From the IMG/VR virus record IMGVR_UViG_3300043409_000928, positions 62,001 to 126,000 of that record: 64,000 nucleotides of DNA, one strand, 5' to 3'. Under the pieces are notes generated by a model that was not told the origin of the DNA, did no database searches, and saw only the letters and a list, made by a program, of their open reading frames with translations. Positions 2,449 through 63,219 of this stretch are shown here, in pieces; position 1 is the first letter of the stretch, and every line of letters begins with the position of its first letter. The position numbers and the translations under genes are program-made.

Positions 2449-3249
2449 TTACACTCTTATTAGAACTTTGTCAAGGGTGCCTGCGTTCGATTGGCTGTCG
2501 AGTCTTGCCACTCGTAACCAACGCACACCAGCATAATAGTTGTATGGATCTATACCAGTGAAACCAGCTAGGTCTAATTTAGCGGTGGTATAATCCTGTG
2601 GCTTCAGATCTGCCCATAATGTAGATCCAACTACCACATCGTCCAAGGTACCTTGTATAATTATACGACCAGTATAATTTGAAGCATAAATTGCCATCGA
2701 AAACAAACTGGTATCTTTTCTGTAAAACTGTGGCCCGTTGAATGCGCTAGATATCAAAATATTATTACCAGTATTGGTCCAAGTTGTTATTTCTGCACTT
2801 GAACGGCTGGTTGGTATAACTTCATCTTTGACTTCAATATCAAAGCCGGCTTGCATTGCTCTATTCCAAGTTAATGCTGTTTCTAAACCATCACCATCTA
2901 CAAAGGTAGCACCTAATTTATAAATGCCACTTGGCAATGTCATCAGGTCCCTGGGTTGTACTACTAGACGAGCTTGTCCGTTTTCTGCAACAGTGGGAAT
3001 TGATCGTCTACGGAAAATAGTAGTTCCTGTGTCACGATTCCACATTGTGATTGTTAGCTCTCTACGAAGCAAACTAACTGGTCTACGGTCGCTTCCAGTT
3101 ACGGTAATGTCTAATATATTGTCTACTCCTTTAAACCAAACAATCCGTTGATCGGTATAACCGGGTGCATGTCTTGTTGTGCTTGGACCCGTGCCTGCAC
3201 CGGCGTAGTTTAGGGTAGCTGAAGGGATAGATGAGTTAAGTGTCGCCAT
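2449..3249 (-). CDS. Hypothetical late (probably virion) beta-rich protein, 266 aa
   Basis: Start moved from 3411 to the ATG at 3249 (MATLNSS), 5 nt after TAAATA. Beta-strand-like composition. Confidence 0.65.
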   Translation of the reverse strand: MATLNSSIPSATLNYAGAGTGPSTTRHAPGYTDQRIVWFKGVDNILDITVTGSDRRPVSLLRRELTITMWNRDTGTTIFRRRSIPTVAENGQARLVVQPRDLMTLPSGIYKLGATFVDGDGLETALTWNRAMQAGFDIEVKDEVIPTSRSSAEITTWTNTGNNILISSAFNGPQFYRKDTSLFSMAIYASNYTGRIIIQGTLDDVVVGSTLWADLKPQDYTTAKLDLAGFTGIDPYNYYAGVRWLRVARLDSQSNAGTLDKVLIRV

Positions 3250-3295
3250 AACAGTATTTAGCAACGACCGGATCTTTAAAATGCTAAGTAAAGCA

Positions 3296-3673
3296 ATGAT
3301 GGATAGTAAAATCAAAGAATTTTTAGAGCGTTTCCCGTTTATGAGCTTGGTTCGGTACGGCGAAACCGAATTGGTAGGTATTATACAAAATAGTGACCAA
3401 ACAGTGGTCACTATGTATGTCTACAACTTATTAAAAGACGGTGACGATAAAACATTATTCATTGAATGTGGAGAAGAATGGTGGTGGGGCAGTAATAGAC
3501 TAATTCCCATCAACATTGTACTAAAGGCACCCATGCGTACATTCTTGTATGCATTAAAAACATACAGTTCAAAAGATTTTGAAGTTCTGCATGGGAACTT
3601 AACCAGCCTTACCAATGTCATTACTAAACGTACAAAAAGACGTCAAATTAGCCTTATAAGAAAGCTAGATTAA
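3296..3673 (+). CDS. Hypothetical late protein, 125 aa
   Basis: ATG at 3296 (MMDSKIKE) lies 5 nt after TAAGTA. Divergent from the 3249 gene. Confidence 0.65.
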   Translation: MMDSKIKEFLERFPFMSLVRYGETELVGIIQNSDQTVVTMYVYNLLKDGDDKTLFIECGEEWWWGSNRLIPINIVLKAPMRTFLYALKTYSSKDFEVLHGNLTSLTNVITKRTKRRQISLIRKLD

Positions 3674-4539
3674 TTTAAGTTTAAGTAGTCACTGGTACTA
3701 TTGTTATCAACCCACAGGTGCTGTGTATCTTTGTATTTTGCAATACTTCTATCTAACAGATCGACATATTGATTTACCTGGTGATTAGTAATTAATTTAC
3801 CTCTCCAAATAAACAATACTTTCATCCCTTTGGCACTCATGAGACTTCTGTGTTTGGTTCTTAAGTTATTCCAAGCAAATGAATTTGTTTCAGCAAGTTG
3901 TGGTATAGCAATGTACTTGTTTGTGTGTTGCTTAATTGGATCTGTTAACAAGTAAAGAGTTTCGCTGGCATTGTTGTCAAATAATTTAACTCGCATTGAC
4001 AATGGTGCATCAATTAGACTAGTACGGTCGCGATGTGGTATTATATCAGCGGCACTGGACCACATGTTCCATGCAAAATCTTTATCACCTACCCAAGGCA
4101 TGTAGTCGTGTATTTGCTCAAAAATTTCAGGGAATTCGGTGTAGGTTTTCTCCAATGCATTTAAAGACCAAATTGGATTCCATCCTGGCGTTACGCTGTC
4201 TATGCTCCTATAAGTTCGATCTGTTTCCGCAACTGTGGCGCTGGCAAAATCAGCCTGAGCCTTGCTTGCATGTTGTGCATTGTTATTAAAATAAAGAATA
4301 AATTTTTCAATGTCATTGATTTTAATACTAGGAATATTGTATGGAACAAACAAGTACTTGCCATATGTTTGTTCAAGCTTGGAGTGAAGGCCAATGACTT
4401 CGGGTAGTAAGCTCAACTCGTGTTTACGAAGCTTGGTTAAATTTTCCTTGGTCTCGGTTACAGCGCCACCTACTTTACGTTCTACGTTTTGTTCGGTGTA
4501 CACTGTTTGATTATCATTGCTCCTGATCATACTTGTCAA
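3670..4539 (-). CDS. Hypothetical protein, possible cupin/2OG-Fe(II) oxygenase fold
   Basis: 289 aa, ATGA overlap with the mini-DnaE stop. HxD (IIPHRD) and a distal His (WNNLRTKHRS). Confidence 0.5.
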   Translation of the reverse strand: MTSMIRSNDNQTVYTEQNVERKVGGAVTETKENLTKLRKHELSLLPEVIGLHSKLEQTYGKYLFVPYNIPSIKINDIEKFILYFNNNAQHASKAQADFASATVAETDRTYRSIDSVTPGWNPIWSLNALEKTYTEFPEIFEQIHDYMPWVGDKDFAWNMWSSAADIIPHRDRTSLIDAPLSMRVKLFDNNASETLYLLTDPIKQHTNKYIAIPQLAETNSFAWNNLRTKHRSLMSAKGMKVLFIWRGKLITNHQVNQYVDLLDRSIAKYKDTQHLWVDNNSTSDYLNLN

Positions 4540-5120
4540 GTATACCCATAACTGATTTGTTCACAAATTAAATTCATTTGTGCAACAATGGCAACTGCAT
4601 ACGCAGTGGCGTGACTTTTCTTAAAGAAGTATTCATCGTTCTTGGGCTTCGTCCAAACTTCGTTCATAATCGTCGTCCATGGCTTCCCAATCAGATAGCG
4701 TTTCGCGGGACGGATCATTGCTAGGACCGCAGATAATTGTTCCACTGAAGTCGGCTGGGTCCTCCGGAGAATATCGCCATGCCCGTTCAAATGAAATAAC
4801 AGATTTACAAAGTCGTTGTCTTGTAATAGATCCCATAATGGCTCCTGGTTGGCTAGTTGATCCAAATGTTCTTTGCTTTTTACCTTTTGGTACAAGCTTA
4901 CATTCAATAAGTCTACTTTAAAAAATCCTAGTTCTTCTGCTTTTTTATAATCAACATCGCACCATCCGGTAAATGGATTGGCTGGTACTGGATGAAAGTA
5001 CACTCCAGTTTTATGCTTTTGCTGTTGATTATTGGCAATCTGCATTGCTGGCGTGTGTGGCAATAGATTAAGAATTGCTTCTCTATTGGCAAAGTCAATG
5101 TCTACGTCGGGATGATTCAC
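4536..5120 (-). CDS. Miniature DNA polymerase III alpha (DnaE)-like protein, 194 aa
   Basis: DnaE motifs in the correct order: PDVDIDF, KHKTGVYF, FFKVDLLNV, QPTSVEQLSAVLAMIRP, YFFKKSHATAYA. Confidence 0.85.
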   Translation of the reverse strand: MNHPDVDIDFANREAILNLLPHTPAMQIANNQQQKHKTGVYFHPVPANPFTGWCDVDYKKAEELGFFKVDLLNVSLYQKVKSKEHLDQLANQEPLWDLLQDNDFVNLLFHLNGHGDILRRTQPTSVEQLSAVLAMIRPAKRYLIGKPWTTIMNEVWTKPKNDEYFFKKSHATAYAVAIVAQMNLICEQISYGYT

Positions 5121-5320
5121 TTTTTAAGTTTCTCTTTAAACATAGTAGTCAGCTGACTCTGTTGTGTTTTAATTTGATTCATTTCTGCATAGAGCATGTC
5201 AAGCTTTTTTATAAATTCAAGCAATCGCAGTTCTAGAGATTCGTATCTAGCGCCTGCATCATCATTGTGTTGATCCACAGTACTTCGTTCGGTTCTTTTT
5301 TTAATTTCTTTATCCACCAT
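5117..5320 (-). CDS. Small coiled-coil hypothetical protein, start uncertain
   Basis: Fills the gap up to the mini-DnaE (GTGA overlap) but overlaps the upstream gene by 88 bp. Confidence 0.4.
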   Translation of the reverse strand: MVDKEIKKRTERSTVDQHNDDAGARYESLELRLLEFIKKLDMLYAEMNQIKTQQSQLTTMFKEKLKK

Positions 5321-5925
5321 TCAGTTTCCACATGTTTTGCTACCGTATCAATTTGAGCTGGTTCCATTCTATCTAATAGATTCTGTGCCGCTTCAGTGGA
5401 GTAAATGATCCATGGACTTAATCTGCCCATAACTACCATATTCATTCCTGTTGCAGGCGGAATCTTATTAAAGAAATCTCTCCAATTGTTTCCGGTTTTC
5501 TCACCCCACTCGCGCATAGTGAGAATTGTTCTTTCAAGTGCTCTATCTGCCGTTTCTTTTTTTGCGGCTTCCTGAACATACAACTGATAAGTGCCGGGCT
5601 TTTGCCAATCACTTAATTTCACTCCCATTTTAAAAAGCCAGTTAATAAACTTGTCACTTTCGTATGGGCGAAGTTCTATCAAATAGTTAGCAAATTTTAT
5701 AAATGCAATGTAATCAAAACTCCTTATAAAATCATCAACTGTCTTTGTTTTTTTAGCGTTTGGACTAACATAGCTAATAAAGTCTGTCCACACTCTAAAA
5801 CCAATTCTGCTGTCTATGTCATCCTTGTTCATCCACCGCCTTTTCTTTTCACACATGTGGTTACTAAGTGTACTTTCGCGGCTAAAGGACTTTAAACAAA
5901 ATTTACATTGATGTTGTTGTGACAT
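5233..5925 (-). CDS. Hypothetical protein with N-terminal zinc finger
   Basis: CKFCLKSFSRESTLSNHMC fits C-x2-C-x3-F-x5-L-x2-H-x-C. Confidence 0.75.
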   Translation of the reverse strand: MSQQHQCKFCLKSFSRESTLSNHMCEKKRRWMNKDDIDSRIGFRVWTDFISYVSPNAKKTKTVDDFIRSFDYIAFIKFANYLIELRPYESDKFINWLFKMGVKLSDWQKPGTYQLYVQEAAKKETADRALERTILTMREWGEKTGNNWRDFFNKIPPATGMNMVVMGRLSPWIIYSTEAAQNLLDRMEPAQIDTVAKHVETEWWIKKLKKEPNEVLWINTMMMQALDTNL

Positions 5926-6420
5926 TTATTTAAACAATTCTTTAAATTCTTTATTACCCATGTTTTGTGAAGTTGCTATTTCAGCTAATACTTCTGGGCC
6001 ATTTATTTCTCGGAACAGTTCAATTTCATCATTGCTCATTGCTGGAAACTTCTCAATGAGCCATGCTGTTAGCTTGTCTTTCTTTGCACCGCCAATTGGT
6101 GGAATAAATTCATGTCTAAGTTTAACGCCCAGTCCAACCAGTGCCAGGGCCTTCCATCGAAGTTCTTCATGTTCACTTGTGGTGGCAATGTAATCAATGT
6201 TGCTGTAGTTGTTTACATCTATTAGATACTGTTCCTGTACATCTCTAGTACCTTGTACTTGACTGGCCCAACGCTGTGCCATAAAAGTGTTTACCCCTTT
6301 TTTATCCTCATCAGATAACTTTGTGTAATAATCACCTTTACGCAGATCCACTGCCGCCATCAATTGGTCAATGGGAACTTTGTATACAGCAGATGCTGGT
6401 GCTTTCTTTTTGGTAGCCAT
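5926..6420 (-). CDS. Probable clamp-loader small subunit, gp62-like
   Basis: YYTKLSDEDKKGVNTFMAQRWAS resembles the gp62 family. Size and replication-operon context fit. Confidence 0.5.
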   Translation of the reverse strand: MATKKKAPASAVYKVPIDQLMAAVDLRKGDYYTKLSDEDKKGVNTFMAQRWASQVQGTRDVQEQYLIDVNNYSNIDYIATTSEHEELRWKALALVGLGVKLRHEFIPPIGGAKKDKLTAWLIEKFPAMSNDEIELFREINGPEVLAEIATSQNMGNKEFKELFK

Positions 6421-6429
6421 ACTGTTATT

Positions 6430-6936
6430 TTAAAACCAAATCTTGTTTAAGTCAAGCACTTCTGGAATTTTATTTGTTTCTTTTAAAAAGAAAGCACAAA
6501 CTGGTTCTTTTTTATGTTCTAAAGGAACTGCCAACACATGCCCAAACTTTAGCTTGGGCACATACCATTTTACTTCTTGGTAGATGTTGACTATTTCAAC
6601 CTTCATCCATTCGGGCTTGTAGCCGTTGATGGGATTAAAGACAAACGTGCTGAACCCACGGTCATTTAAACTCATTACATTGATAACTTCTGGCTCTCCG
6701 TGATCGGGTTCTCCAATAATCAGTGACCAATCTAATGGCACTTTGAGTTCATGACTTCCTATACGCAATACTGCCGCAGGACAACTGAAGCTTTCTAAGA
6801 AAACAAGTGGTACAAACATATAGTCAACATCAGCAGGATTGCTGTAGTCAAGTACCCCGTAGCGCAAGTCTTCATCAATTTCTTCTGGTAAACGATCTAA
6901 ATCGTATGACAGATTATCAACTGTTAATATTCTCAT
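6430..6936 (-). CDS. Hypothetical protein, possibly a degenerate Hint-like beta fold
   Basis: 168 aa, coupled to uvsW. Fold guess from the hydrophobic pattern only. Confidence 0.6.
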   Translation of the reverse strand: MRILTVDNLSYDLDRLPEEIDEDLRYGVLDYSNPADVDYMFVPLVFLESFSCPAAVLRIGSHELKVPLDWSLIIGEPDHGEPEVINVMSLNDRGFSTFVFNPINGYKPEWMKVEIVNIYQEVKWYVPKLKFGHVLAVPLEHKKEPVCAFFLKETNKIPEVLDLNKIWF

Positions 6937-8390
6937 TTATAAATTACCTTTTCAGTTTGATATGGATAGTTTGCTTCTTCATAAAATTTCTTGCGCTTGG
7001 CCAAGTGTCTTTTGGCAAACTTTGCTGTGCTTGTTATGTCCCATATCTGGACAAAGTCTTTGTCTTCTGCTTTTCTAATACCTCGGCCAATGCTCTGTAT
7101 AACCCTGACAAAACTCTTTCCAGGCTCCACTAGAACCAAGTTAAAGATCCTAGGTATATTAATACCCACAGAGGCCACACCATACGTGGCCACAATGATT
7201 TTATTTGTTGCAAGAGTAACTTCATCATACTCTTCTTTTCTATCCTTTGATTTCATGGACCCTGATACAAATACGCTTTCTGGTAAACGCTCAACCAGCA
7301 TCTTACCCGAAGCAATACGATCGACCAATACCAAAGTATTTCCACTTTGACTAATTGCATCAATGGTCTTGGCCAGTTCATCAATCCTGCGTTCATTGCT
7401 GGTCAGATATGTTAATTCTTCTTGATATGTTTTGTATTCAACTTTATCATCAAATTGCAATACCTTTACATGGCAGTTACTCAATACACCAATGTCCTGT
7501 AGTTCACTGGCCTGTAATCTATGTAGGACATTGCCCAATGATGCTGTTAGACTGATATATTCATGTTCTTCTTTGGGTATGGTACCTGTTAACCCCCAAC
7601 GAATTGGAACATTTGCAAACGGGCCCGTCAACATTGTTTTAAGTACATCAGCCTTGGCCATGTGTACTTCGTCAACAATTACTGCAATCAGGTCATCCGT
7701 AATTGCTTCAATGCCAATTGCACTGGTTCCTTCTTTGCTTCGTTTGATTAAGGAGTTGATACTTTGCCATGTTGCAATGGTATGTGTATGCCCAAGATCT
7801 TTCTCGTCACCAAAGTATACACCAACATCTAATCCCATGTTGACATAGTCTGCATGTGTCTGCCGCACTAGATCCTTGTTGGGTACAATAACAACTGTGC
7901 GGCCATACGGTTCACACGTAAGACTCATGGCCGCTGTCATTAATGTCTTGCCAGCACCTGTTGCAATCTCTTGAACACCATGCGGATTAGCAAGGAAGCG
8001 ATTGATACACTCTACTTGGTAATCGCGAATCTTAATAGGCTGGCCTTCTGCTACGTGTCCTTTGGGCCAAAGTATGTGACTAAAGGTGTCCTCGGTAACT
8101 TCAGCAAAATTGAAATTGTGCGCGGTCCGCTTGTCTTCAATTTCAATTTGCCAACCTTCCTCATCTATAATGGGCAATACTCGTTCTAATAGATTTAGAT
8201 AGGTCGACCCTGCGGTGGTAAAGAAGCTGATCTTACCATCCCATCTTCCTAGCCTAAAGGCCGGCACATGATAAGCATATGGTAATTGATATTTTAGTTT
8301 GGCTTCGCATCGTCTGCGTGTTGAAGCATCTAAGTCGTGAAACTTGACATTTACTTCATCTTTGATTTCTAATCGGCATATTCCAGGCAT
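6933..8390 (-). CDS. uvsW: UvsW-like SF2 DNA helicase
   Basis: IRDYQ, ATGAGKT, DEVH, LTGT, QSIGRGIR. Confidence 0.92.
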   Translation of the reverse strand: MPGICRLEIKDEVNVKFHDLDASTRRRCEAKLKYQLPYAYHVPAFRLGRWDGKISFFTTAGSTYLNLLERVLPIIDEEGWQIEIEDKRTAHNFNFAEVTEDTFSHILWPKGHVAEGQPIKIRDYQVECINRFLANPHGVQEIATGAGKTLMTAAMSLTCEPYGRTVVIVPNKDLVRQTHADYVNMGLDVGVYFGDEKDLGHTHTIATWQSINSLIKRSKEGTSAIGIEAITDDLIAVIVDEVHMAKADVLKTMLTGPFANVPIRWGLTGTIPKEEHEYISLTASLGNVLHRLQASELQDIGVLSNCHVKVLQFDDKVEYKTYQEELTYLTSNERRIDELAKTIDAISQSGNTLVLVDRIASGKMLVERLPESVFVSGSMKSKDRKEEYDEVTLATNKIIVATYGVASVGINIPRIFNLVLVEPGKSFVRVIQSIGRGIRKAEDKDFVQIWDITSTAKFAKRHLAKRKKFYEEANYPYQTEKVIYK

Positions 8391-8395
8391 AAAGT

Positions 8396-8424
8396 ATTAT
8401 AACAGGTGTAAGGGGTAATGTCTA
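8396..8424 (-). promoter_or_regulatory. sigma70 promoter of uvsW, leaderless
   Basis: TAGACA-17-TATAAT with TGn extension. ATG follows the -10 after 5 nt. Confidence 0.8.
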
Positions 8425-8469
8425 TTCGTATGTTACCGTTATGGCAATACATGTATCAATGAGGCTAGA

Positions 8470-8475
8470 TACTTA
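8470..8475 (-). promoter_or_regulatory. Late promoter motif TAAGTA upstream of uvsW
   Basis: Intergenic match to the recurring TAA(A/G)TA motif. Confidence 0.5.
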
Positions 8476-8515
8476 GTGCAAAATCACTGGTTTTAAAAAG
8501 CAATTTGTCCATAAT

Positions 8516-8542
8516 CAAAAGAAAAGGCTCCGTAGAGCCTTC
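8516..8542 (-). terminator. Rho-independent terminator of the DUF4214 gene
   Basis: AAGGCTC-4 nt-GAGCCTT followed by TTCTTTT on the minus strand. Confidence 0.8.
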
Positions 8543-8557
8543 CTTAAATCGAGTAGA

Positions 8558-9457
8558 TTACAAGACTACTGGAGTATACTCAATGCCGGTAGTAGCAAGA
8601 CCAACCAGTCCAATTGTGGTTTCAAATGCTGGCAACTCACTGGCGGCAACTAGCACATCAGCTTGTGACAAATTGCCATTGCTCATCCATGCTGTGTAGT
8701 CTGTGACTTGTGCCAATGTTGCATCAGTGCCAAATACATTTTTGTAAACATGCTTGATGAATGTTTCATTGCTGACGCCACCTGCATCTGTTTTGTAAAC
8801 ATCCGTGGCCAACAACGCTTGGGCCAATTGTTTGTTGGTCCATCCTGCATCAGCTAGACCAATTCCAATTCCTTTATATGCGTTAGTAACATCAGCAGTA
8901 CCAAGTGCGGCTGACAACAATGCATATACATCACCTGCACGACCTGCGGCATCATAGGCAATGGCCTTGTCTGTGAACACCACACGCTCGTGATCAGCAA
9001 GGTTAAATTCCACATTGGTGGCCAATGTGCTGTCTAATTCAATTTTACCAGCAGTCTTGGCAACGGTGTATTCGGTACTTGCACCACCGACCGTATAAGT
9101 GTCAACACCTGCGGTGCCAGTAACATCAACTGTGATATCAACTGTGCCGTCACCTGCACGACCTGTACCTACTACACCAAATGTAGCAATCTTACCTGCT
9201 GTGCCAACTGTGGCCACTGTGACGATTAGGTTGTTGGCCGCTGTTCCACCTAGTGCTGTACCAGCAAGAGTGATAGTGTCACCTGCAACATAGCCCGAAC
9301 CTGAGCTGGCCGCAAGTGAGTCAAGGACCACAGAATATGTTCCGTTGGTCTTTGTAACATCAAATATGGCTCCGTCTCCTGTGCCACCTGTTAAACCTGT
9401 AACATTTTGGTAAGTTGTGTTTACCGGTTTGTCTTTGATTGTAATTGTCGTTGTCAT
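8558..9457 (-). CDS. DUF4214-domain (S-layer/secreted-protein-like) protein, 299 aa
   Basis: C-terminal DHERVVFTDKAIAYD...AGDVYALLSAALG...SNETFIKHVYKNVFG pattern. G/T-rich N-terminal beta domain (GSGYVAGDTITLAG). Confidence 0.75.
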   Translation of the reverse strand: MTTTITIKDKPVNTTYQNVTGLTGGTGDGAIFDVTKTNGTYSVVLDSLAASSGSGYVAGDTITLAGTALGGTAANNLIVTVATVGTAGKIATFGVVGTGRAGDGTVDITVDVTGTAGVDTYTVGGASTEYTVAKTAGKIELDSTLATNVEFNLADHERVVFTDKAIAYDAAGRAGDVYALLSAALGTADVTNAYKGIGIGLADAGWTNKQLAQALLATDVYKTDAGGVSNETFIKHVYKNVFGTDATLAQVTDYTAWMSNGNLSQADVLVAASELPAFETTIGLVGLATTGIEYTPVVL

Positions 9458-13297: not shown

Positions 13298-13502
13298 CTA
13301 CAAACCCACTTAGTATTGCATATACTCCATCTGCACTTCTTTCAATCCTTACTTGATTGCTAAAGCCAGCATACTGAAATACGCCTTGTTCAACTCGTTT
13401 AAAACAGTCAATCATAATTTCTGGTTCACCCATAACATCTGCATGAATCATTTCTGCTTCGTACAATGTTTGAAGCTGTTCGATCAAAGTTTTTATCAGC
13501 AT
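13290..13502 (-). CDS. Hypothetical protein, 70 aa, leaderless
   Basis: ATG lies 5 nt after TGtTATAAT. Confidence 0.65.
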   Translation of the reverse strand: MLIKTLIEQLQTLYEAEMIHADVMGEPEIMIDCFKRVEQGVFQYAGFSNQVRIERSADGVYAILSGFVDD

Positions 13503-13507
13503 AACAT

Positions 13508-13536
13508 ATTATAACATAAAATGTTGTCAAGGCCAA
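13508..13536 (-). promoter_or_regulatory. sigma70 extended -10 promoter
   Basis: TTGGCC-17-TATAAT with TGn extension. Confidence 0.65.
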
Positions 13537-21000: not shown

Positions 21001-21852
21001 TTAACCCAGTAACTTGTTTAGTGCGTTGTCTAATTCTGCTACTGCTTCGCTGACCAGGCTATTGTCAACTGTATCTGTATTTGGTAAAGCGTATTCGTTG
21101 ATGTCGGTTAGGTCACCTGTGCGAGCGGCTCTCTCCATCATTCTGCGAAGCATTATTACTTCGTTTCTACCTCGTTCACGAATTTGATTTACTTGTGCGG
21201 TTTCGCCAAGCTTTTTAGACCAGCGTAACAATTCCATAATTTCTTTACGGCGTCTGCTGATCTCAAGAATCTTTTCACCTGCATTGTCCCACGGCTTGCC
21301 ACCTGACTCAACATGCAATGCCATTACTCTGGCGCCCAGTAAATGATTGAATGGGAAACGAAAACGCTCTCCATCTTTTTCAATAAACAGGGCCTTGATG
21401 TTACGGCTACGGGCTCCAGGCTTTTCTTCAGTTACACTTTTAGAGTGTGCCAATCTAACCTGTGTGCCACCCAATGGATGATAGCTAATTTTTAAACTGT
21501 TGCGACTTTCTATTACTTTTTCAGTTCTGTGACTCAATTGCTTGGGCTTGATTTCGCCGTCATAACTGCGGATAGTTGTACCGTACAAATATCTACGGGC
21601 TATAGCTTGTATTCTTGGTTTAAAATCTTCTTCTAACCAATCGGTATCAGTTTTAATAGGATCGTACCAAATTTCAATATCGGTATTCTCGTGATTGATA
21701 AAAACCATTACGCCCAATTTTGGCAAATAGTTATATACAGCGTCGTCTTGTTTTAAGGTGCTGTTACCATCTTCATCCTGAAAATTAGCATCGTGGCTAA
21801 CTCCTGCTACACTGGCAGATACTTCCCTGGCTAAGTCTTCTTTTGTTGACAT
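21001..21852 (-). CDS. Hypothetical late protein, 283 aa
   Basis: Start reassigned to MSTKEDL, 5 nt after TAAATA (21858-21863). Confidence 0.75.
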   Translation of the reverse strand: MSTKEDLAREVSASVAGVSHDANFQDEDGNSTLKQDDAVYNYLPKLGVMVFINHENTDIEIWYDPIKTDTDWLEEDFKPRIQAIARRYLYGTTIRSYDGEIKPKQLSHRTEKVIESRNSLKISYHPLGGTQVRLAHSKSVTEEKPGARSRNIKALFIEKDGERFRFPFNHLLGARVMALHVESGGKPWDNAGEKILEISRRRKEIMELLRWSKKLGETAQVNQIRERGRNEVIMLRRMMERAARTGDLTDINEYALPNTDTVDNSLVSEAVAELDNALNKLLG

Positions 21853-21865
21853 AAATGTATTTACC

Positions 21866-25454: not shown

Positions 25455-25961
25455 CTATTTATTGTTACCCGCACTCTTTAGGATGGCTTTGACAATGTCG
25501 TTACGATTTCCTGTAATACCTGCATCTGTAGCATCAATTACATTGTTCGAATCGTTACCTTTTTCGTTGTCCAGTCTTGCTTTACGCAATTGTAGTTCAA
25601 CCATTTTAAGTTTTTTGTCTATTTTTGCTGTTTTGGCGTCAACTGCTGTTTTAAGTAGCTGTGCCGCAACTTCAAATATTTTACCAGCATTCCTATCATC
25701 AACATTAAAACCCAAATCCATCAAGCGATCACTGTGCTCTTGTGCGAGATTGGCCAAAATGTCAAGCTCACGCTCAGCATTTGCCATATCTGTTACTGTT
25801 GGTAACGCCAAGTCAACACGATTTGCCATATCAATTGTAGCTATGGCAGTATCTAGTTCGCTCTGTATTTCTTCAGGTAGCTGAGAATCTTGAGTGTCTT
25901 GTTCGAGGTTAGCTTCATCAATCGGTGGGAAGCCAAAAACCTCTTCTAATTTTTTAGTCAT
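25455..25961 (-). CDS. Probable terminase small subunit, gp16-like
   Basis: Helical protein with FEVAAQLLKTAVD resembling the gp16 core, upstream of gp17. ATG lies 5 nt after TAAGTA. Confidence 0.55.
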   Translation of the reverse strand: MTKKLEEVFGFPPIDEANLEQDTQDSQLPEEIQSELDTAIATIDMANRVDLALPTVTDMANAERELDILANLAQEHSDRLMDLGFNVDDRNAGKIFEVAAQLLKTAVDAKTAKIDKKLKMVELQLRKARLDNEKGNDSNNVIDATDAGITGNRNDIVKAILKSAGNNK

Positions 25962-25975
25962 GCAATTACTTATGA

Positions 25976-26425: not shown

Positions 26426-26718
26426 TACAATTCACGGGCTACCAATCCTGACACAGTCTTTACTGAGTCTTTCCTGTATCGAATAGTGCTGGGTAAATTT
26501 TTATTAATTATATCAAGGATGGGTTGCTCAACATCAAGCTGGCCGTCACGAATGCTATTATCTAAGAATTTTTTAAAATCAATGTCAAGGTCTTGACATA
26601 ATTTCCAAAAAGATAATACCAAGCTTTCTGCAGGAGTCCTACTAAGTCCAATGGCCAGTATGCGTTGTACCGCTTTATCAAATTCAACTTGTGGTATTAC
26701 TTTATAATTCATGATCAA
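26425..26718 (-). CDS. Hypothetical protein, 97 aa
   Basis: Coupled ORF within the late operon. Confidence 0.65.
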   Translation of the reverse strand: MIMNYKVIPQVEFDKAVQRILAIGLSRTPAESLVLSFWKLCQDLDIDFKKFLDNSIRDGQLDVEQPILDIINKNLPSTIRYRKDSVKTVSGLVAREL

Positions 26719-28139
26719 TAAACCTTATCGCGTGGTGCCTTAATGCGGCCATGCCCCGTTGCAGTATCTGGTGGCTGTTTGTATATGCCCGCTTGTTCCA
26801 ATTGTACTTGTCTAGATACAATTTCATTACCTTTTGCATCATTTGGTCTTGATCGGATCACGCTGGTACCTTCTCTTACTGTATTTGGTGCAGGTTCCTG
26901 AGATTTTAAATTGGCATTGGCAGAAGCTATGCCGGCGTCACTGGTTCTAGTTTGAGTTGGATATTTTGAGCCATCTCTTTGGGCGGCGGCATCTGCCGCC
27001 AGTTTGGCCATTTGCTGGGACTGTGGTGAATTGCTCAATGGAGGATTTTTCTTAAGATTTTCAATATAGGATTTTTTATATTCTTCGCTATAAGTAGAAT
27101 TTTTCATGTTAGCTTCTTCTTGTGTAACAAGATCTTTATGCTTTTGAGTAAGCTCTGGTTGTTTATTTGAAGTTGCTGGTATGTTACTTCCTGTACTTGG
27201 GTTTACTGTTCCTGCGGCCACACTATTTGTTGAAGCGGTTCCGTTTGCTGTTCCACCAGGCCATGCACGGGCCGCTTCTCTAGCGGCATTGGCCTGTGCG
27301 GCACGATCGCGTAAACTGCCAGGTCTGATATTTGGATTGCCCAGGCGTGTTTGATTTGTCATAGTAGGATTGCCAGTAGCGGCGCCGCCGCCTGTGACTG
27401 TGCCGCCAGCATTTGTCCAAGCGTTTCCAAAGTCAGGTTTTTTAGTCTCAGCAACAGCATCTGCCTTTGGCGGCTTGGTAATAGGAGTAAAAGAAGAGGA
27501 TGTCTTTTTATCATTTGATATCACTGGCTTTGGAGGCTTTGGTAATGGTTTAATAAGTGTTGGCGGAAACTTTGGAGTAGGACCTTCAAATCCAGGGCCT
27601 TTTAAATCTTCGTAACGAACGGTAATTGTCCATAGTACAGGATCACTTGTTGAGTAGTCTAACGTATCATGCTGAGCATCAACGATGAAAGCATTTGTCA
27701 AGGTGTATACTTTGGGGGCGGCGCCAGGTGCAGATAAGTTTTTCATTGTGATTTCAATTGTCAATGGTTTAAATTTACTGGCCTTGCTTGAATCTGTAGG
27801 GTCAAATTGATCTTTGACAAAGTTCCAAATCATTGATTCAGCAGTACCATTTGCCTGATCATAAAAACTGATGGTGATTGGTTCGTAGTTTAACTTTGTT
27901 TGTACAATTGTTTTATGGTTGTACACATTGACAATTTGCGTTTCTACTGAGAAGCGGGGCAGTTCGCATGACTTTGCCACCAATGGTGGAGCAGAGCTTA
28001 AATCTGAGTCAGTGACCTTAATTGACCATGCATATTTTAAATATACAAAACCATCGCCCAATGGCAATTGATTGGGGTACGGTCCATGGTTCTGTACTCC
28101 ATTTAATATCTTCTTAGTTGCAATGTTACTGAATGACAT
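26715..28139 (-). CDS. Tail-tube-fold protein (gp54/gp48-like) with long C-terminal extension
   Basis: N-terminal ~180 aa parallels the tube gene (ELPRFSVET...VYNHK...YEPITISFYD), followed by a P/K- and A/T/N-rich tail. Confidence 0.65.
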   Translation of the reverse strand: MSFSNIATKKILNGVQNHGPYPNQLPLGDGFVYLKYAWSIKVTDSDLSSAPPLVAKSCELPRFSVETQIVNVYNHKTIVQTKLNYEPITISFYDQANGTAESMIWNFVKDQFDPTDSSKASKFKPLTIEITMKNLSAPGAAPKVYTLTNAFIVDAQHDTLDYSTSDPVLWTITVRYEDLKGPGFEGPTPKFPPTLIKPLPKPPKPVISNDKKTSSSFTPITKPPKADAVAETKKPDFGNAWTNAGGTVTGGGAATGNPTMTNQTRLGNPNIRPGSLRDRAAQANAAREAARAWPGGTANGTASTNSVAAGTVNPSTGSNIPATSNKQPELTQKHKDLVTQEEANMKNSTYSEEYKKSYIENLKKNPPLSNSPQSQQMAKLAADAAAQRDGSKYPTQTRTSDAGIASANANLKSQEPAPNTVREGTSVIRSRPNDAKGNEIVSRQVQLEQAGIYKQPPDTATGHGRIKAPRDKVY

Positions 28140-28148
28140 TTGTTCATG

Positions 28149-28175
28149 AAAAAGGGCGAGTTTAATCGCCCTTTT
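28149..28175 (-). terminator. Terminator after the tail tube gene
   Basis: AAAAGGGCGA-6 nt-TCGCCCTTTTT. Confidence 0.8.
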
Positions 28176-28239
28176 CTTTCTCCTGTAAGGGCAAGCATTT
28201 TTGCTTACACTTACTTATCACTTCTAATTAACGCTTACT

Positions 28240-31976: not shown

Positions 31977-31981
31977 AAACT

Positions 31982-32010
31982 ATTGTAGCATAACTATAAC
32001 ACTAGGTCAA
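31982..32010 (-). promoter_or_regulatory. sigma70 promoter of dNMP kinase, leaderless
   Basis: TTGACC-17-TACAAT with TGn extension. ATG follows after 5 nt. Confidence 0.85.
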
Positions 32011-48870: not shown

Positions 48871-49101
48871 TCATTTTTTTGGTTTAAAAAAGTTGTATGC
48901 CGACTGTGAAATTTCTGATATAAAGTCATTACTTGGTGCAACTTTACCCCATTTTCCTACAGGACAAGATTCATTTGCCAGTGTTACTTTTAAATTAACT
49001 AAACAACCACACTGTCTGCATTGTTTTGCAGGACGATAGTACCATTCACACTTTTGGCATTGCCCTGCTCGTTCTAATCTTATTTGCATTGATGTAAACA
49101 T
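48871..49101 (-). CDS. Small Cys-rich metal-binding protein
   Basis: CQKC...CRQCGC...CPVGKW. TAAGTA at 49108-49113. Confidence 0.7.
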   Translation of the reverse strand: MFTSMQIRLERAGQCQKCEWYYRPAKQCRQCGCLVNLKVTLANESCPVGKWGKVAPSNDFISEISQSAYNFFKPKK

Positions 49102-49119
49102 ATAATTTACTTACTCATA

Positions 49120-49178: not shown

Positions 49179-50378
49179 TTAGATGAAGCTTAGGCTTGTG
49201 CTATCAATAGCGATAGTGTTTACATAATCAGCCGCATTACCTAAAGAGGAACCTGCATTTGACAATTCAACATATCCATAACGAGTCATGAAGCTTACTG
49301 TTGGCTCGAATGTTGCTGGATCTAAAATAACACCAGAACTCATCAATGGAATGTATGGGCAATAAAATGCTGGAGCATCCATCTCGTTTGCGCCTTTGTA
49401 ACCAACTAGCACTGGACTTGCATCGCCTGCATAGTGGTTTACATAAACACGAACTGAGCTGTTTAATGTACCAACAAACTTAGTATTTGTTGGGGCTTCA
49501 AATGTACCTTCTGTTGTACGAGCAAATGCGCTGGTAGTGGCAGATTGTAGAATTGTTAAAGCTGTTGGGCTAACAACGATGTAGTTACCAGCACCACGAC
49601 GTGTGCGGGCGGCAATATCGTTAGCGGCACGGTTTACTAATACTGCAAGTGCGGCGTGTTGATCACCAACAAAGTTGGCTTGACCTGATACTGCTGACTG
49701 ATCGTATGTACCAAAAGCAGAACCTGCCAAGTTGATCAATGAACCGATAACTTCTTGGTCGATTTCAGCAGTAATTTCTTGTGCTAGAGCGGCCATGATT
49801 TCAGCTTCAACATCAACACCGTGGATGGCTTGAGCGTCTTGAGCCGCTTCAAATGTCCAACGAGCTGACAACTTGCGTGATTTAGCTTCAACAGTCTCTT
49901 TCAAGATCTGGATGTTCATCTTTCTGCCGCCGGCACCTTCTAAGGTACCTGTGGCTTCAGCTTTACCAGCTGTGCTACCAGAATACTGAGTAGCGATGCT
50001 GAATGGGCTTAGTGCTTCATCGCTGGCTGTAACAGCTTTACCGATGTTGCCGTCTGCGGCTGAACTTGCACTTACTGATTCTGCATAACGCACACGCAAT
50101 GTGTGGATCTGAGAAACTGGGCCTTGCATTGGTTGTACACCAACTAATTCGTTAGCAATGGTTGTTGGCATTACACGACGAATAACTGGCAAAATAACCT
50201 TGTTTAGTACGCTGATGTTACCAGAAGCTGTACCACCGGCAGTGGCTGTTTCTGTCAAATACTTCTTAGTATTTTCTAAGCATACTTCCATTGTAGTCTT
50301 ACGCTGACCACTTAGACCTTCTAAAAGGGCTGATTTAGTAGCTGACCAATTTTTAGCTTCAAATAGAGCTTGTGACAT
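49179..50378 (-). CDS. gp23: Major capsid protein, gp23-like
   Basis: LPVIRRVMP, GVQPMQGP, KSRKLSARWTFE, EITAEIDQE, FYCPYIPL, FMTRYG. Confidence 0.96.
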   Translation of the reverse strand: MSQALFEAKNWSATKSALLEGLSGQRKTTMEVCLENTKKYLTETATAGGTASGNISVLNKVILPVIRRVMPTTIANELVGVQPMQGPVSQIHTLRVRYAESVSASSAADGNIGKAVTASDEALSPFSIATQYSGSTAGKAEATGTLEGAGGRKMNIQILKETVEAKSRKLSARWTFEAAQDAQAIHGVDVEAEIMAALAQEITAEIDQEVIGSLINLAGSAFGTYDQSAVSGQANFVGDQHAALAVLVNRAANDIAARTRRGAGNYIVVSPTALTILQSATTSAFARTTEGTFEAPTNTKFVGTLNSSVRVYVNHYAGDASPVLVGYKGANEMDAPAFYCPYIPLMSSGVILDPATFEPTVSFMTRYGYVELSNAGSSLGNAADYVNTIAIDSTSLSFI

Positions 50379-52847: not shown

Positions 52848-53019
52848 TTATATGTCTCCTTGCGCTAAGGGGTACACACCACATTAAGAGTGTGCTTTAC
52901 CAATAACTACTTACAGAAGGCACACTTAAATGATGCTGAAATGGCAGTAAAAACGGAGTTTTTGACAGTTATGTTACGATGATAAATGTAAAAATCCGCC
53001 TTATTATTGGCGGATCTTA

Positions 53020-53226
53020 TTAAGTTGCTGGGGGTCTTGCGTACATTGTTTTAACAAACTTCAGTCTTTGTTTGTTTTCATAATCTCTTAGATCTCTAAT
53101 TTTTCTTAGTTGATTTATATGTTCCAGTGTTAGACGCTTCCTACGCAGGTCTCCAAAGAAAGCAACTTCGGGGTCAATTTCTTTTTCAATTTCTTCTTCA
53201 GCGTTGATAATATCATTGAATCTCAT
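53020..53226 (-). CDS. Hypothetical late protein, 68 aa
   Basis: Start reassigned to MRFNDII, 5 nt after TAAGTA. Confidence 0.7.
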   Translation of the reverse strand: MRFNDIINAEEEIEKEIDPEVAFFGDLRRKRLTLEHINQLRKIRDLRDYENKQRLKFVKTMYARPPAT

Positions 53227-53251
53227 AGCTCTACTTATCCAATTTAGGCTA

Positions 53252-54925
53252 TTAAGCTGGAGGAGATGCAGCCGGTGTTGGGCTTGCAGAAGCGCCAGTA
53301 TCAGCTGTATCTGTGGCAACATCAGGAGCGGCACCTAGATCACCTATGCCACCTGACAGGTCTAAGTCACCTTCTGAAGGACCTTTTAATCCAGTTGCAC
53401 CAAAGTCTGCACCTTCTTCATTTGGTTGACTTTCCCCGGCATTTTCTTCTCTCCAGGCTTTTTCGTTTTCTAAGATTTCATCATCTGTCAGTCCTAAGAA
53501 TTTCTGTAGTTTGAAGCGATGTGCTAGATACGGAATTTCTGCTAGCTGTGTGAATACTGCGGCACGGGCATTGTTAATTTCAATTTCTCTGTAGCCACTG
53601 AAGTTTTGCGGCTCAAGCATGTCAATATCAAAACTCGAGCTATCAATATTAACACCACGCTGTTTTAAGAATATTTTAAATTCTTTATCTAAATACGGAG
53701 CAACTAAACCTTGTAATCGTCTGCAATATCGATTGAATCGAAATTCCTGAATTAATGCTGTACCCATACGTCCGTCTGTAAACTGTACAGCAGTATCATC
53801 TGGGCCAGTTGGCAAATAACTACTTGGAATACGCAGACCACGCAGTAACTTATTAGTAAAAAACTTCAAGTCGTCAATTTCACCCAGCCCTTGCCCACCG
53901 GGCAATACTTCAACTTTTGATCCACGACCATCGGCTGTTTGTGCAAAGAAGAAATCTTCCATGATACTCAATGGATTATAACTAGCATCCATTTGTGTAC
54001 TACCACCAGAACGAGTTGGAATACGGCGTTGATGTATTTCGTTTTTAACACGCTCAACGAAAGCCATGGCCTGGTGACTTGGTAAATTGCCTGTATCAAT
54101 ATAGAATACTCTGCGTTCTGGAGCTCGCTGTACACGATAGATGATAATAGCATCTTCAAGTAATTCTTTTTGCTTGTAAATTTTAAATACACTATCTAAA
54201 ATACTTGCACCAAACGGCCAGCTAGCATCTAACCCTTCATTTAATGTGATATGTATAACATGCTCACCATCAACAGCAATTTCACCACCCTGTGCTCCAG
54301 GTTTACCGTAATTACTGCCTTGACTATATACCCCTGGCGTGTTAGGTGCCGCGGCACCTGTTAATGTCTGTACATTATCAATAGGTTGTGTTGCAACTTT
54401 ATTTGCAAAGTTAGGGTGTACATTGGCAATAACATATTGTTCAACTGCGCGACCTTCGGCTTCATTGATAACTGCTCGTTTCACATCTGCTGAGTTAACC
54501 CAGTACAGTTCAAATGTTTCTGGATCACGCAAGAAGAAATGATCACCATACTTGATTGCATTTCTAAATGTACGGAATATACGCTGATCCATTTTATTAA
54601 TGGCACACCACTTTTTCAATGATGCAGTAACAATCTTACTTTCACTTTCTGTTGGTTCTTCTTTCCACATCACACGGAATGGTAAATTTGTATCTGGTTC
54701 TGATTGTGTGCAAAATTCAGCAATGGTGTCCAGTGCGGCATTGATCTCGCTGTCTTGGTCCATTTGATCGTATTGAACATATCGTTCAACTCTGTTTGGT
54801 TGTCCAGTGTATACATCTTGTAACCAAGATGCAAATTTTGCAGAAGATCCTTGAACAGCTTGACGGCCATTACTTTTTAGTTCACCTTCTGGTTCCCAAA
54901 TTTTAAAATGTTTTCTCCAACTCAT
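53252..54925 (-). CDS. gp20: Portal protein, gp20-like
   Basis: EDAIIIYRVQRAPERRVFYIDTG, EDFFFAQ, LPGGQ, LRIPSS. ATG lies 5 nt after TAAGTA. Confidence 0.95.
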   Translation of the reverse strand: MSWRKHFKIWEPEGELKSNGRQAVQGSSAKFASWLQDVYTGQPNRVERYVQYDQMDQDSEINAALDTIAEFCTQSEPDTNLPFRVMWKEEPTESESKIVTASLKKWCAINKMDQRIFRTFRNAIKYGDHFFLRDPETFELYWVNSADVKRAVINEAEGRAVEQYVIANVHPNFANKVATQPIDNVQTLTGAAAPNTPGVYSQGSNYGKPGAQGGEIAVDGEHVIHITLNEGLDASWPFGASILDSVFKIYKQKELLEDAIIIYRVQRAPERRVFYIDTGNLPSHQAMAFVERVKNEIHQRRIPTRSGGSTQMDASYNPLSIMEDFFFAQTADGRGSKVEVLPGGQGLGEIDDLKFFTNKLLRGLRIPSSYLPTGPDDTAVQFTDGRMGTALIQEFRFNRYCRRLQGLVAPYLDKEFKIFLKQRGVNIDSSSFDIDMLEPQNFSGYREIEINNARAAVFTQLAEIPYLAHRFKLQKFLGLTDDEILENEKAWREENAGESQPNEEGADFGATGLKGPSEGDLDLSGGIGDLGAAPDVATDTADTGASASPTPAASPPA

Positions 54926-54946
54926 AGCGTTACTTACCTTATTTTT

Positions 54947-57892: not shown

Positions 57893-57926
57893 TAAATTAC
57901 GGTCCTGAAGCCATTATATTAGTACA

Positions 57927-57963
57927 TAAATAGATTATGAAAGTAGGCCTACGAACCTATTTA
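57927..57963. promoter_or_regulatory. Face-to-face late promoters for gp26-like (+, 57927-57932) and tape measure (-, 57958-57963)
   Basis: TAAATA present on both strands. Confidence 0.6.
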
Positions 57964-57981
57964 CCGTTAAGGATTAAGTAC

Positions 57982-59640: not shown

Positions 59641-59757
59641 AGTTTGCTAATTGAATTTGCGAAATCGCTGTGAGTGTCTACATTGCGTAGTAAATTAGCC
59701 AGGATGAGTTATTGTACACTTTAATTATCAAATGAGCCAGGTGAGTTATAGCCGTTG

Positions 59758-60186: not shown

Positions 60187-60377
60187 TACTTGGGAGTTGA
60201 CAGGGCTTCTTTCTCGGCTGTAATCTCTTTACGGCGTTCTTTGATTGCTTTGCTCATTTCTTGCAGAGCCTTACGAGCTCGAGCGGCCGCGGCCTTTACA
60301 CCCTTGCCTGAGAACTTTTCGTTTTCAGCTTTATAATTTTCAAATTGTTCTAAAAGTGTTTCATGATTTGTTGACAT
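60186..60377 (-). CDS. Histone H1-like (Hc1-type) small basic protein
   Basis: KGVKAAAARARKAL motif. Start at 60377 with SD AAGGAG. Confidence 0.6.
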   Translation of the reverse strand: MSTNHETLLEQFENYKAENEKFSGKGVKAAAARARKALQEMSKAIKERRKEITAEKEALSTPK

Positions 60378-60387
60378 TACAGTCTCC

Positions 60388-62166: not shown

Positions 62167-63185
62167 TGTGTAAGTCCTTGATAGATATGTGCCAGTATTT
62201 GCTTATCAATTTGAGCAGAGTCAATTGCTTGTATCTGATTTAATACAATAGCATCAACTGATTCAAACTGTAGTTCGCCACCCTTCCATTCAGTTGAGTG
62301 TTCTTCTTTCTTGGTTGGCATTAGACTAAGCTCTCGCATTCCATATTCGTTGACCCATTTTTCTTTAATATAGGTTGCTTCTTCAAACGAAATATCAACA
62401 TCAATTGTAACACGGGCAAAAGTATGTTCATCAAACAAACTCTCATGTTTATCAATTGCATCTGTTAGTGTTAGTGTTCTAAATTTTGGGGCACTGGGCC
62501 AGTTTTGGAATTCTGGTTGACCACCATATTCTAAAAACATGCAACCACGCTCGTCATCCCACGCATCGGCGTAGTTGTGCGGGAAACAATTTCCCATGTA
62601 TACAACATTACCTCGCTTTTGTCGTTTATGAAAGTGTCCAGAAAATACAAGCTCTTGGTTGGGAAAGTGTCCTTCGTTCAATCCGCCATGGTCTGGCATT
62701 TCTACCATGGCATTCATTTTAAAATGTGGAAGTTCAAAGTGTCCAAATACATAACGACTCTTTAACTTTTTCATGTTCTCCCATTCACTGCCAACAAGCC
62801 AAGGAACAATTGTCATATCACCGATGGTTGTAATCTCATCAATCAAGTTAACATTGCTCAAGTGTCTAGCAAACGGGAGTGAGTTGATTTCACGCTTCTC
62901 TCTATATGCCAAATCATGGTTACCCATAATAATGTATACCTGCTCAAAGTTTTCTGAAAGGTACTTGACATTTGAAGTAGTGTAGTTGAGTGTGCTCACA
63001 TTCACAGTGGATCTGTTGTTGTGCCAATCGCCAAGGAAGATGCAAGTTTCAGCACCTGCTCGTTTGGCTTCTTGGGTCATCCATTTTATAAAGTTCTCAC
63101 AATCATCATTGTGAGCTCTACTGTTGTTTCTTAAGCCAAAATGAATATCTGTAAAGCACACAGCTTTTTTAAAAGGTTGAGTCAT
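62163..63185 (-). CDS. gp47: Recombination endonuclease nuclease subunit, gp47/SbcD-like
   Basis: DIH, GDW, GNHD, GHFE, SGHFH. Confidence 0.93.
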   Translation of the reverse strand: MTQPFKKAVCFTDIHFGLRNNSRAHNDDCENFIKWMTQEAKRAGAETCIFLGDWHNNRSTVNVSTLNYTTSNVKYLSENFEQVYIIMGNHDLAYREKREINSLPFARHLSNVNLIDEITTIGDMTIVPWLVGSEWENMKKLKSRYVFGHFELPHFKMNAMVEMPDHGGLNEGHFPNQELVFSGHFHKRQKRGNVVYMGNCFPHNYADAWDDERGCMFLEYGGQPEFQNWPSAPKFRTLTLTDAIDKHESLFDEHTFARVTIDVDISFEEATYIKEKWVNEYGMRELSLMPTKKEEHSTEWKGGELQFESVDAIVLNQIQAIDSAQIDKQILAHIYQGLTH

Positions 63186-63190
63186 CAGTA

Positions 63191-63219
63191 ATTATAGCAT
63201 TTCTATTGTTGTAGGACAA
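63191..63219 (-). promoter_or_regulatory. sigma70 promoter of gp47, leaderless
   Basis: TTGTCC-17-TATAAT with TGn extension. ATG follows after 5 nt. Confidence 0.75.

Follow-up and report, generated by a model that had tools for sequence, protein, structure and literature searches.

A window of 64,000 nucleotides (nt), bases 62,001–126,000 of one 285,304-bp contig of 41.5% G+C from an uncultured freshwater jumbo phage (IMG/VR record IMGVR_UViG_3300043409_000928, classed as a linear virus and about 86% complete), was analysed for promoter elements that lie directly before start codons. The window carries T4-like replication and recombination genes (UvsW, gp46/47-like SbcCD and a deoxynucleoside monophosphate (dNMP) kinase) together with a structural module comprising TerL, sheath, a tube-like protein, portal, protease, a scaffold-like protein, the major capsid protein (MCP), the baseplate hub and fibres. 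Two kinds of element were found to abut ATGs, a T4-like late element, TAA(A/G)TA (TAARTA, late class), and an extended -10 element, TGNTAYAAT (sigma70 class). All 11 sites listed in a preliminary description of this DNA were recovered on the strands and with the spacings given there, and one further window site, absent from that list, was found at the hub gene. These sites, with two late-type elements located further upstream of their genes, are as follows.

3247–3260, minus strand: late-class site of a 266-amino-acid virion structural protein (gene 3249; PHROG 14467); TAAATA at 3255–3260, 5 nt, ATG at 3247–3249.
3285–3298, plus strand: late-class site of a 125-amino-acid protein (gene 3296; PHROG 11637); TAAGTA at 3285–3290, 5 nt, ATG-ATG.
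8388–8424, minus strand: sigma70-class site of the UvsW-like helicase (gene 8390; PHROG 16); TAGACA-17-TGT-TATAAT-ACTTT-ATG.
8470–8475, minus strand: second uvsW promoter, late-type TAAGTA, with a predicted transcription start (+1) near 8464; conserved in four orthologue loci.
13500–13516, minus strand: sigma70-class site of a 70-amino-acid open reading frame (ORF; gene 13502), the weakest member; TGT-TATAAT-ATGTT-ATG, extended -10 only.
21850–21863, minus strand: late-class site of a 283-amino-acid virion structural protein (gene 21852; PHROG 13484, residue 23 aligned to profile position 24); TAAATA, 5 nt, ATG.
25959–25972, minus strand: late-class site of a 168-amino-acid protein (gene 25961; PHROG 16202); TAAGTA, 5 nt, ATG.
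31974–32010, minus strand: sigma70-class site of the dNMP kinase (gene 31976; PHROG 139); TTGACC-17-TGC-TACAAT-AGTTT-ATG.
49099–49113, minus strand: late-class site of a 76-amino-acid protein (gene 49101; PHROG 13558); TAAGTA, 6 nt, ATG.
52908–52913, minus strand: leadered control, a TAAGTA that precedes the head-gene operon (52847 to MCP) by about 60 nt; the genes of this operon have Shine–Dalgarno (SD) sites AAGGAG/TAAGGAG.
53224–53237, minus strand: late-class site of a 68-amino-acid protein downstream of portal (gene 53226; PHROG 13986); TAAGTA, 5 nt, ATG.
54923–54936, minus strand: late-class site of the portal protein (gene 54925); TAAGTA, 5 nt, ATG.
57927–57939, plus strand: late-class site of the baseplate hub (gene 57937; PHROG 150); ATAAATA-N4-ATG.
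63183–63219, minus strand: sigma70-class site of the gp47/SbcD-like nuclease (gene 63185; PHROG 100 from residue 5); TTGTCC-17-TGC-TATAAT-TACTG-ATG.

The late-type promoters of genes 3249 and 3296 stand back to back, each fused to its own ATG, within a 46-nt divergent spacer (3250–3295). Gene 21852 lies directly 3' of the TerL stop codon, the 49101 promoter is found a few bases 3' of the hairpin that follows the MCP gene, and a terminator-like hairpin is present upstream of uvsW at 8522–8543. At three of the four sigma70-class sites in the window, a hexamer resembling a -35 (TAGACA, TTGACC and TTGTCC) precedes the -10 by 17 nt. For gene 13502, neither a PHROG match nor a properly spaced -35 was found.

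Coupling between motif and start codon was scored across the genome as d, the number of nucleotides between the end of the motif and an ATG, in an annotation-free scan of both strands at offsets of 0–40. The mean over d = 9–40 served as the background per offset, and P values are Poisson. Of the 257 copies of TAARTA, 31 are followed by an ATG at d = 5, with a background of 5.6 (P = 9.5e-14), and every other triplet at that offset occurs 10 times or fewer, so that ATG is the commonest by a factor of three. When only ATGs that open ORFs of at least 50 amino acids were counted, 23 were found at d = 5 against 2.0 (P = 6.6e-17) and 36 at d = 4–6 (P = 1.3e-16). The 64 copies of TGNTAYAAT behave in the same way, with an ATG at d = 5 in 9 cases against 1.3 (P = 1.2e-5) and an ORF-opening ATG in 6 against 0.34 (P = 1.7e-6). 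The whole-genome motif-to-ATG histogram that had been proposed as a check therefore gave a spike at d = 5 for both motifs, with P values from 1e-5 to 1e-17. Nothing comparable was returned for related control words under the same offset scan, and the identical scan of T4, PA5oct and Atu_ph07 gave no excess at offsets 4–6. Chance is thus excluded as the source of the coupling. In the curated catalogue of 347 ORFs genome-wide, promoter-adjacent genes number about 34 of the late class and about 9 of the sigma70 class, or about 12% of the total. Five relaxed TGNTANNNT matches (genome 10519, 39931, 78037, 229783 and 232706) were rejected, as they either had no credible -10 or lay deep within ORFs.

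The ATGs next to these promoters are true starts. Nearly every one of them is the first ATG of its ORF and has an in-frame stop a few codons before it. PHROG alignments of the encoded proteins begin at profile positions 1–30, and orthologue sequence is conserved from Met1. The N-terminus of the gp47-like protein reads MTQPFKKAVCFTDIHFG, with SbcD/Mre11 motif I (DIH) at residues 13–15, and the P-loop of the dNMP kinase occupies residues 10–17. Statistics on SD sites and on the base at -1 were taken from 42 curated promoter-adjacent ATGs, with the other 305 genes for comparison. No SD was found at 39 of the 42; the SD-like tetramers of the remaining three are the AAGG of AAGG-TAARTA and lie at least 11 nt from the ATG. 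An SD of at least 4 nt precedes 216 of the 305 other genes. With N-termini that fit their families and so few SD-like sequences, the starts assigned in the preliminary description, and the lack of SD sites claimed for them, are borne out. The base at -1 is a pyrimidine at 35 of the 42 promoter-adjacent ATGs (83%), compared with 41% of other genes (Fisher P = 2e-7). Bacterial RNA polymerase favours a pyrimidine at -1 and a purine at +1, so this bias is expected if the A of the ATG is +1.

The evidence points to TAARTA as a promoter rather than a ribosome signal. It is 7-fold enriched on the sense strand in the 80 nt upstream of genes, at an overall frequency of roughly half the base-composition expectation (a rough estimate), and it is found before head, tail and portal genes and directly 3' of terminator-like hairpins at 49101. 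Sixty-three copies lie 8–80 nt upstream of genes, most of them SD-equipped, and the G/A-rich bases at -2/-1 of the motif are alike in the 4–7-nt and 8–80-nt classes. Where TAARTA lies 15–60 nt upstream of SD-led genes, its distance to the conserved SD is variable; at gene 48838, for example, ggTAAATA is found 20–25 nt before AGGAG in 16 relatives. This presence upstream of SD-led genes argues for a promoter and against a ribosome signal. The element can be written (G/A)N-TAA(A/G)TA, with no conserved -35 seen, and corresponds to the last six bases, -11 to -6, of the T4 late box TATAAATA, of which the genome holds only 8 full copies. Since the T4 box occupies -13 to -6 (Geiduschek and Kassavetis review, PMC2988020), a 5-nt spacer would place +1 on the A of the ATG, as the preliminary description had reasoned from the same T4 rule.

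A gp55-family late sigma is encoded at genome 126493–127479 (minus strand), just past the window end and adjoining gp46/47 as in T4. It is matched by T4 gp55 in tblastn (E = 1.6e-5), by phrog_12791 (E = 5e-90) and by phrog_234 (E = 3.8e-24), and at 328 amino acids, against 185 in T4, it has about 140 extra N-terminal residues. Enrichment, hairpin context and this sigma together agree with the earlier assignment of the motifs as promoters. The gp55-like gene has signals of its own, namely a sigma70 promoter (TTGACA-17-TATACT), a TAAGGAG SD and a GTG start, and a MazG-like pyrophosphatase gene is located 3' of it.

The nearest cultured relatives are the jumbo myoviruses of the PA5oct/Atu_ph07/Phosso group, with a portal identity of only about 49%, and megablast against a phage collection returned no matches. 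Near-identical DNA is present in many lake and freshwater metagenomes and also in lake metatranscriptomes. Orthologues were taken from IMG/VR, as several hundred loci around seven genes, and d was tabulated per distinct upstream sequence. For gene 53226, d is 5 in all 37 distinct upstreams, which have 20 different spacers and either TAAGTA or TAAATA. Gene 21852 has d = 5 in 23 of 25, with d = 6 and d = 7 once each and 12 different spacers, and gene 3249 in 37 of 44 (d = 6 in 3, d = 7 in 4). At gene 3296, TAAGTA is found at d = 5–8 from a conserved Met-Asp, and the divergent 3249/3296 arrangement is kept in at least 40 distinct relatives. All 18 orthologues of 49101 show the hairpin and TAARTA followed by N4 (14) or N5 (4) and ATG, and ATAAATA lies at d = 4–5 before hub orthologues. 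Close orthologues of other genes are more varied: d = 5 in 9 of 20 for 25961 (d = 4 in 8, d = 1 in 3), in 14 of 22 for gp47 (d = 6 in 4, d = 7 in 2, d = 8 in 1) and in 13 of 32 for portal (d = 6 in 1, d = 7 in 10, d = 8 in 5). In the sigma70 class, TGnTAnnnT-N5-ATG is present in 8 of 9 dNMP kinase orthologues of at least 85% identity, with 8 different spacers and varied -10 hexamers, and in 4 of 5 close uvsW orthologues, again with differing spacers; the TTGACA-17-TGnTAnnnT arrangement is likewise kept in orthologues of sigma70-class genes. The register is thus strongly conserved, with a tolerance of 0–3 extra bases at some genes, and the comparison supports the view that the fused layout is under selection in the relatives.

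Beyond this set of close relatives, the same genes are found with ordinary leaders. In 9 of 10 distant orthologues of 53226, the ATG is preceded by GGAGG or GGAGAGG, distant portal orthologues have TAAATA about 25 nt upstream and an AAAGG SD, and relatives of 25961 at 40–50% identity lack the motif. In 55 of 64 distant dNMP kinase orthologues, TTGACA-17-TATAAT is followed by a leader that spans about 17 nt and contains GGAG, and the protein is 4 residues shorter; distant gp47 orthologues show TTGAC-17-TACAAT-atagtAAGGAG. The fused promoter and the SD leader are thus interchangeable at these genes, and the fused form characterises this phage clade. The SD sites of the head operon (52847 to MCP) are conserved in its orthologues. 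In the portal genes of Atu_ph07 and Phosso, TAAATA is located 22–27 nt upstream with an AAGGA SD, and PA5oct has no TAAATA there; the late element thus seems to be shared across the wider group, and the fusion to the ATG does not. At gp47, the -10 of relatives overlaps the final codons (..EML stop) of a small gene lying upstream. This gene is gone or replaced in the window, where the remnant TTGTCC-17-TGCTATAAT is kept as non-coding DNA (63186–63234, minus strand).

RNA was examined in assembled, unstranded Logan unitigs of lake metatranscriptomes, which break at strain variants and in which gaps prove nothing. At the leadered control, depth climbs from about 3 at 53029 to about 100 at 52831, just downstream of TAAGTA 52908–52913, and head-operon contigs end from 52879 to about 52899, close to the predicted +1 at 52902. 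The depth step and the contig ends support this TAAGTA as a promoter. Over 2700–8650, where depth is 2–12, genes 3249 and 3296 are both covered, yet no contig in four runs crosses 3241–3305; one fragment ends at 3240 and continues into adapter, and contigs start at 3306, 3309 and 3318. This pattern fits what is expected for two back-to-back leaderless transcripts. The fragment end at 3240 and another at about 8455, upstream of uvsW, belong to a leaderless and a leadered promoter respectively, and each falls within the transcript at about 9 nt from the +1 that TAARTA predicts, a small point of agreement.

Taken together, these observations make it probable that the promoter-fused genes are expressed as leaderless or near-leaderless mRNAs. 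RNA polymerase would start on, or 0–3 nt from, the A of the AUG at about 12% of genes, and the resulting mRNA would have neither leader nor SD. The late element is presumably read by the phage gp55-like sigma, and the early/middle class would be served by host sigma70 through the extended -10 TGnTAYAAT, in many cases combined with a TTGACA-like -35 at 17 nt. Two modes of initiation would then operate side by side, as the same late element would drive SD-led genes from 15–60 nt upstream; the bulk structural genes would be SD-led, and the enzymes, portal, hub, minor virion proteins and many unknowns leaderless. What we infer from this arrangement is where exactly transcription starts, that host ribosomes translate AUGs at the 5' end of an mRNA, and any quantitative role that this may have.

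Several observations weigh against this interpretation. The spacing varies, being 7–8 nt in 15 of 32 portal orthologues and ranging from 4 to 8 nt across portal, 3296 and gp47. In the sigma70 class, d = 5 makes the A the 6th base after the hexamer, an allowed position that is one base short of the modal start, and gp47 orthologues mostly have G at -1. No match to the T4 proteins gp33 and gp45, nor to PF02916/PF09116, was found in a record that is about 86% complete and for proteins that diverge fast. The Betaproteobacteria, at which the phage transfer-messenger RNA (tmRNA) hints weakly as hosts, are not a group known for efficient leaderless translation. The RNA unitigs at the test sites have a depth of 2–12, are strandless and give a coarse picture of start sites, and some of them extend past the predicted starts. 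A contig at 53027–53391 spans the 53226 start and so represents read-through RNA, and another runs 13–15 nt past the portal ATG, placing the portal gene on read-through RNA as well. At uvsW, contigs from two runs reach 8447–8455, 57–65 nt upstream of the ATG, one of them then passing into adapter, and depth is 0 beyond 8471. With the conserved TAAGTA at 8470–8475, these contigs indicate that uvsW has a leadered late transcript (a leader of about 74 nt, no SD) besides any leaderless early one. Given such read-through and leadered RNA, SD-less internal initiation or reinitiation may contribute to the translation of uvsW, 53226 and portal. Transcription starts well upstream of the ATGs, which the preliminary description had named as the finding that would refute leaderless expression, were thus encountered for one uvsW transcript, and the sigma70-N5-ATG arrangement is still conserved in uvsW orthologues.

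The read-through over the 53226 and portal starts and the leadered uvsW RNA would also be expected if the adjacency of promoter and ATG were a by-product of genome packing, with the proteins made mainly from read-through RNA by SD-independent initiation or by reinitiation after an upstream stop. Stop codons are indeed found 13–25 nt before many of these ATGs, about 89 of the 305 other genes are also without a clear SD, and many portal orthologues have d = 7–8 nt. However, packing does not predict one preferred distance amid sequence drift (37 of 37 and 23 of 25 upstreams) or the -1 pyrimidine, and the same layout is present in uncrowded places, namely after the hairpin at 49101, at uvsW with its 167-nt spacer and at the dNMP kinase. 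T4, PA5oct and Atu_ph07 are equally compact, yet the spike is absent from them, and packing is considered an unlikely explanation.

That TAARTA-N5-ATG is instead a non-SD translation signal, recognised by the ribosome or a phage factor, is very unlikely. The motif does show a close link with start codons and takes the place of the SD in orthologues, and AAGG precedes TAARTA at the portal gene and 21852, but this AAGG would be 11–14 nt from the ATG. The same element with the same flanks is found 15–60 nt upstream of genes with their own conserved SD, it matches the T4 late box in a genome that encodes a gp55-like sigma, and RNA depth and contig ends shift just downstream of it. Moreover, the unrelated TGnTAYAAT with its -35 shows the same spacing. 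The least probable explanation, and one that we give hardly any weight, is that the starts are misplaced, the real ones lying downstream or upstream with ordinary SD sites and the adjacent ATGs being incidental. A simple SD-weighted picker did choose other starts for 13502, 63185 and 57937, and ORFs extend upstream of the ATG at 3249, 21852 and 53226, but these extensions would overlap neighbouring genes and the ATG is nearly always the first of its ORF. Catalytic motifs and PHROG profiles begin at these N-termini, orthologues are conserved from Met1, and incidental ATGs cannot yield a spike at d = 5.

The products of the sigma70-class genes are enzymes that act on DNA or nucleotides (UvsW, gp47/SbcD, dNMP kinase, dCMP deaminase, an exonuclease and a phosphohydrolase), and those of the late class include portal, the baseplate hub, two virion structural proteins, two radical-SAM proteins and a cytidyltransferase as well as many unknowns. 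SD sites are present at MCP, the scaffold-like protein, gene 52847, sheath, gene 28845 and TerL. The earlier statement that high-copy genes keep their SD therefore stands for MCP, the scaffold-like protein, 52847, sheath and 28845 and fails for the tail-tube-like gene (26715–28139, minus strand), which lacks both an SD and an adjacent promoter. Immediately upstream of the ATG of this tube-like gene (28140–28190, minus strand), there is a G+C-rich hairpin and, after it, a T run. RNA depth is 100–2500 for MCP and 1–16 for portal; since depths already differ 10- to 100-fold at the transcript level, the division into SD-led and leaderless genes is no demonstration of dose setting. RNA depths being the only expression data, the low-copy tier put forward in the preliminary description gains no support from this analysis, and its other proposal, resistance to host shut-off such as toxin-modified ribosomes, is neither supported nor contradicted. 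An alternative rationale is suggested by uvsW: an SD-less gene may be translated efficiently only from a promoter-proximal transcript, which would tie protein output to the gene's own promoter and not to read-through.

Phage-encoded parts of the translation apparatus were also considered. The 29 tRNA genes lie at genome 16821–33681 (minus strand). Two of the four tRNA-Met(CAT) genes (31062–31136 and 32465–32540) start CGCGGGG and end GCAACCA, giving the initiator-type C1xA72 mismatch, and the anticodon stems of these two initiator-like tRNAs do not contain three consecutive G:C pairs. The three G:C anticodon-stem pairs of initiator tRNA are inspected by initiation factor 3 (IF3). Among phage-encoded modifiers of initiation, ribosomal protein S21 and IF3 were sought and not found. 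A permuted two-piece tmRNA of betaproteobacterial type is encoded at genome 43031–43421 (minus strand; RF01850, 132 bits, full length), with the tag ANDSQFALAA according to ARAGORN; its type is a weak hint at a host among the Betaproteobacteria, and the host clues WhiB and PsbA were not found in the phage. It is an unlikely but conceivable extension that this abundant clade of freshwater jumbo phages, possibly with betaproteobacterial hosts, has switched a particular set of early and late genes from SD-led to leaderless expression. The 29 tRNAs, the two initiator-like ones among them, and the tmRNA may then support an SD-independent channel during takeover of a host in which leaderless mRNAs are not normally favoured. 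The promoter-adjacent phosphohydrolase gene of the sigma70 class (ATG 42973) is located just downstream of the tmRNA.

Leaderless expression is known from other phages and cells. In phages it is documented for single regulators such as lambda cI, and on a large scale for Thermus phages alone, which infect hosts that favour leaderless genes. The lambda cI mRNA from PRM is the classic case, with a sigma70 promoter, a transcript that starts at the AUG and a spacing of 6 nt; it represents a single regulatory gene of a temperate phage, whereas here dozens of genes of a lytic jumbo phage are involved, mostly with 5 nt. Cellular leaderless genes with an ORF-adjacent -10 are also found in Actinobacteria and archaea. 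In the Thermus phages phiYS40 and Lalka27a, middle and late transcripts are mostly leaderless, and late promoters consist of a phage-specific -10-like element without a -35 (PMC3594737; bioRxiv 10.64898/2026.04.20.719267). A shift in IF2/IF3 levels has been reported for phiYS40. A majority of leaderless transcripts, as in phiYS40, is not seen here, where about 43 of 347 ORFs are promoter-adjacent; the trait is partial, at about 12% of genes, and the late element is found upstream of SD-led genes too. This element also differs, being a T4-like TAARTA accompanied by a gp55-like sigma, and the Thermus host phylum is rich in leaderless genes, which the host of this phage probably is not.

In cells of the Deinococcus-Thermus group, leaderless genes are widespread, with a TANNNT-type -10 a few fixed bases before the ATG, no SD and a spacing that is needed for expression (PMC12340547). 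The motif-to-ATG histogram is the same diagnostic in both cases, but theirs is a host-wide property of the housekeeping sigma, whereas here it would be a property of a phage clade with two sigma specificities and SD-led sister clades. With T4 late transcription, this phage shares the lack of a -35, the last six bases of the box, a gp55-family sigma and the position of the element upstream of structural genes. T4 late genes are leadered, however, with ORF-opening ATGs peaking 23–29 nt after TATAAATA and none at 4–6 nt; the first two bases of the T4 box (TA) are G/A-rich here, and the fourth position can be A or G. The PA5oct transcriptome paper describes sigma70-like promoters only and leaves leaderless genes unmentioned. 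A search of the literature on T4-like phages, jumbo phages and cyanophages gave no report of leaderless late genes and returned only gene-finder citations.

What appears to be new is therefore the fusion of T4-like late and host-type early promoters to start codons in a fixed register, at about one gene in eight and across hundreds of related lake contigs. The SD-led orthologues of the sister clades provide a natural matched gene set in both configurations, which can serve to ask what leaderless initiation buys the virus, be it dosage, promoter-tied timing or SD independence. Gene callers that rely on SD sites will misplace these starts, and the motif-to-ATG register offers a cheap means of annotating promoters and starts in this uncultured phage group. 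In the lake metatranscriptomes, the MCP region at 49249–49845 is found at word depths of 600–2600 with many strain variants, and these depths point to active and abundant expression of this phage clade in the lakes concerned.

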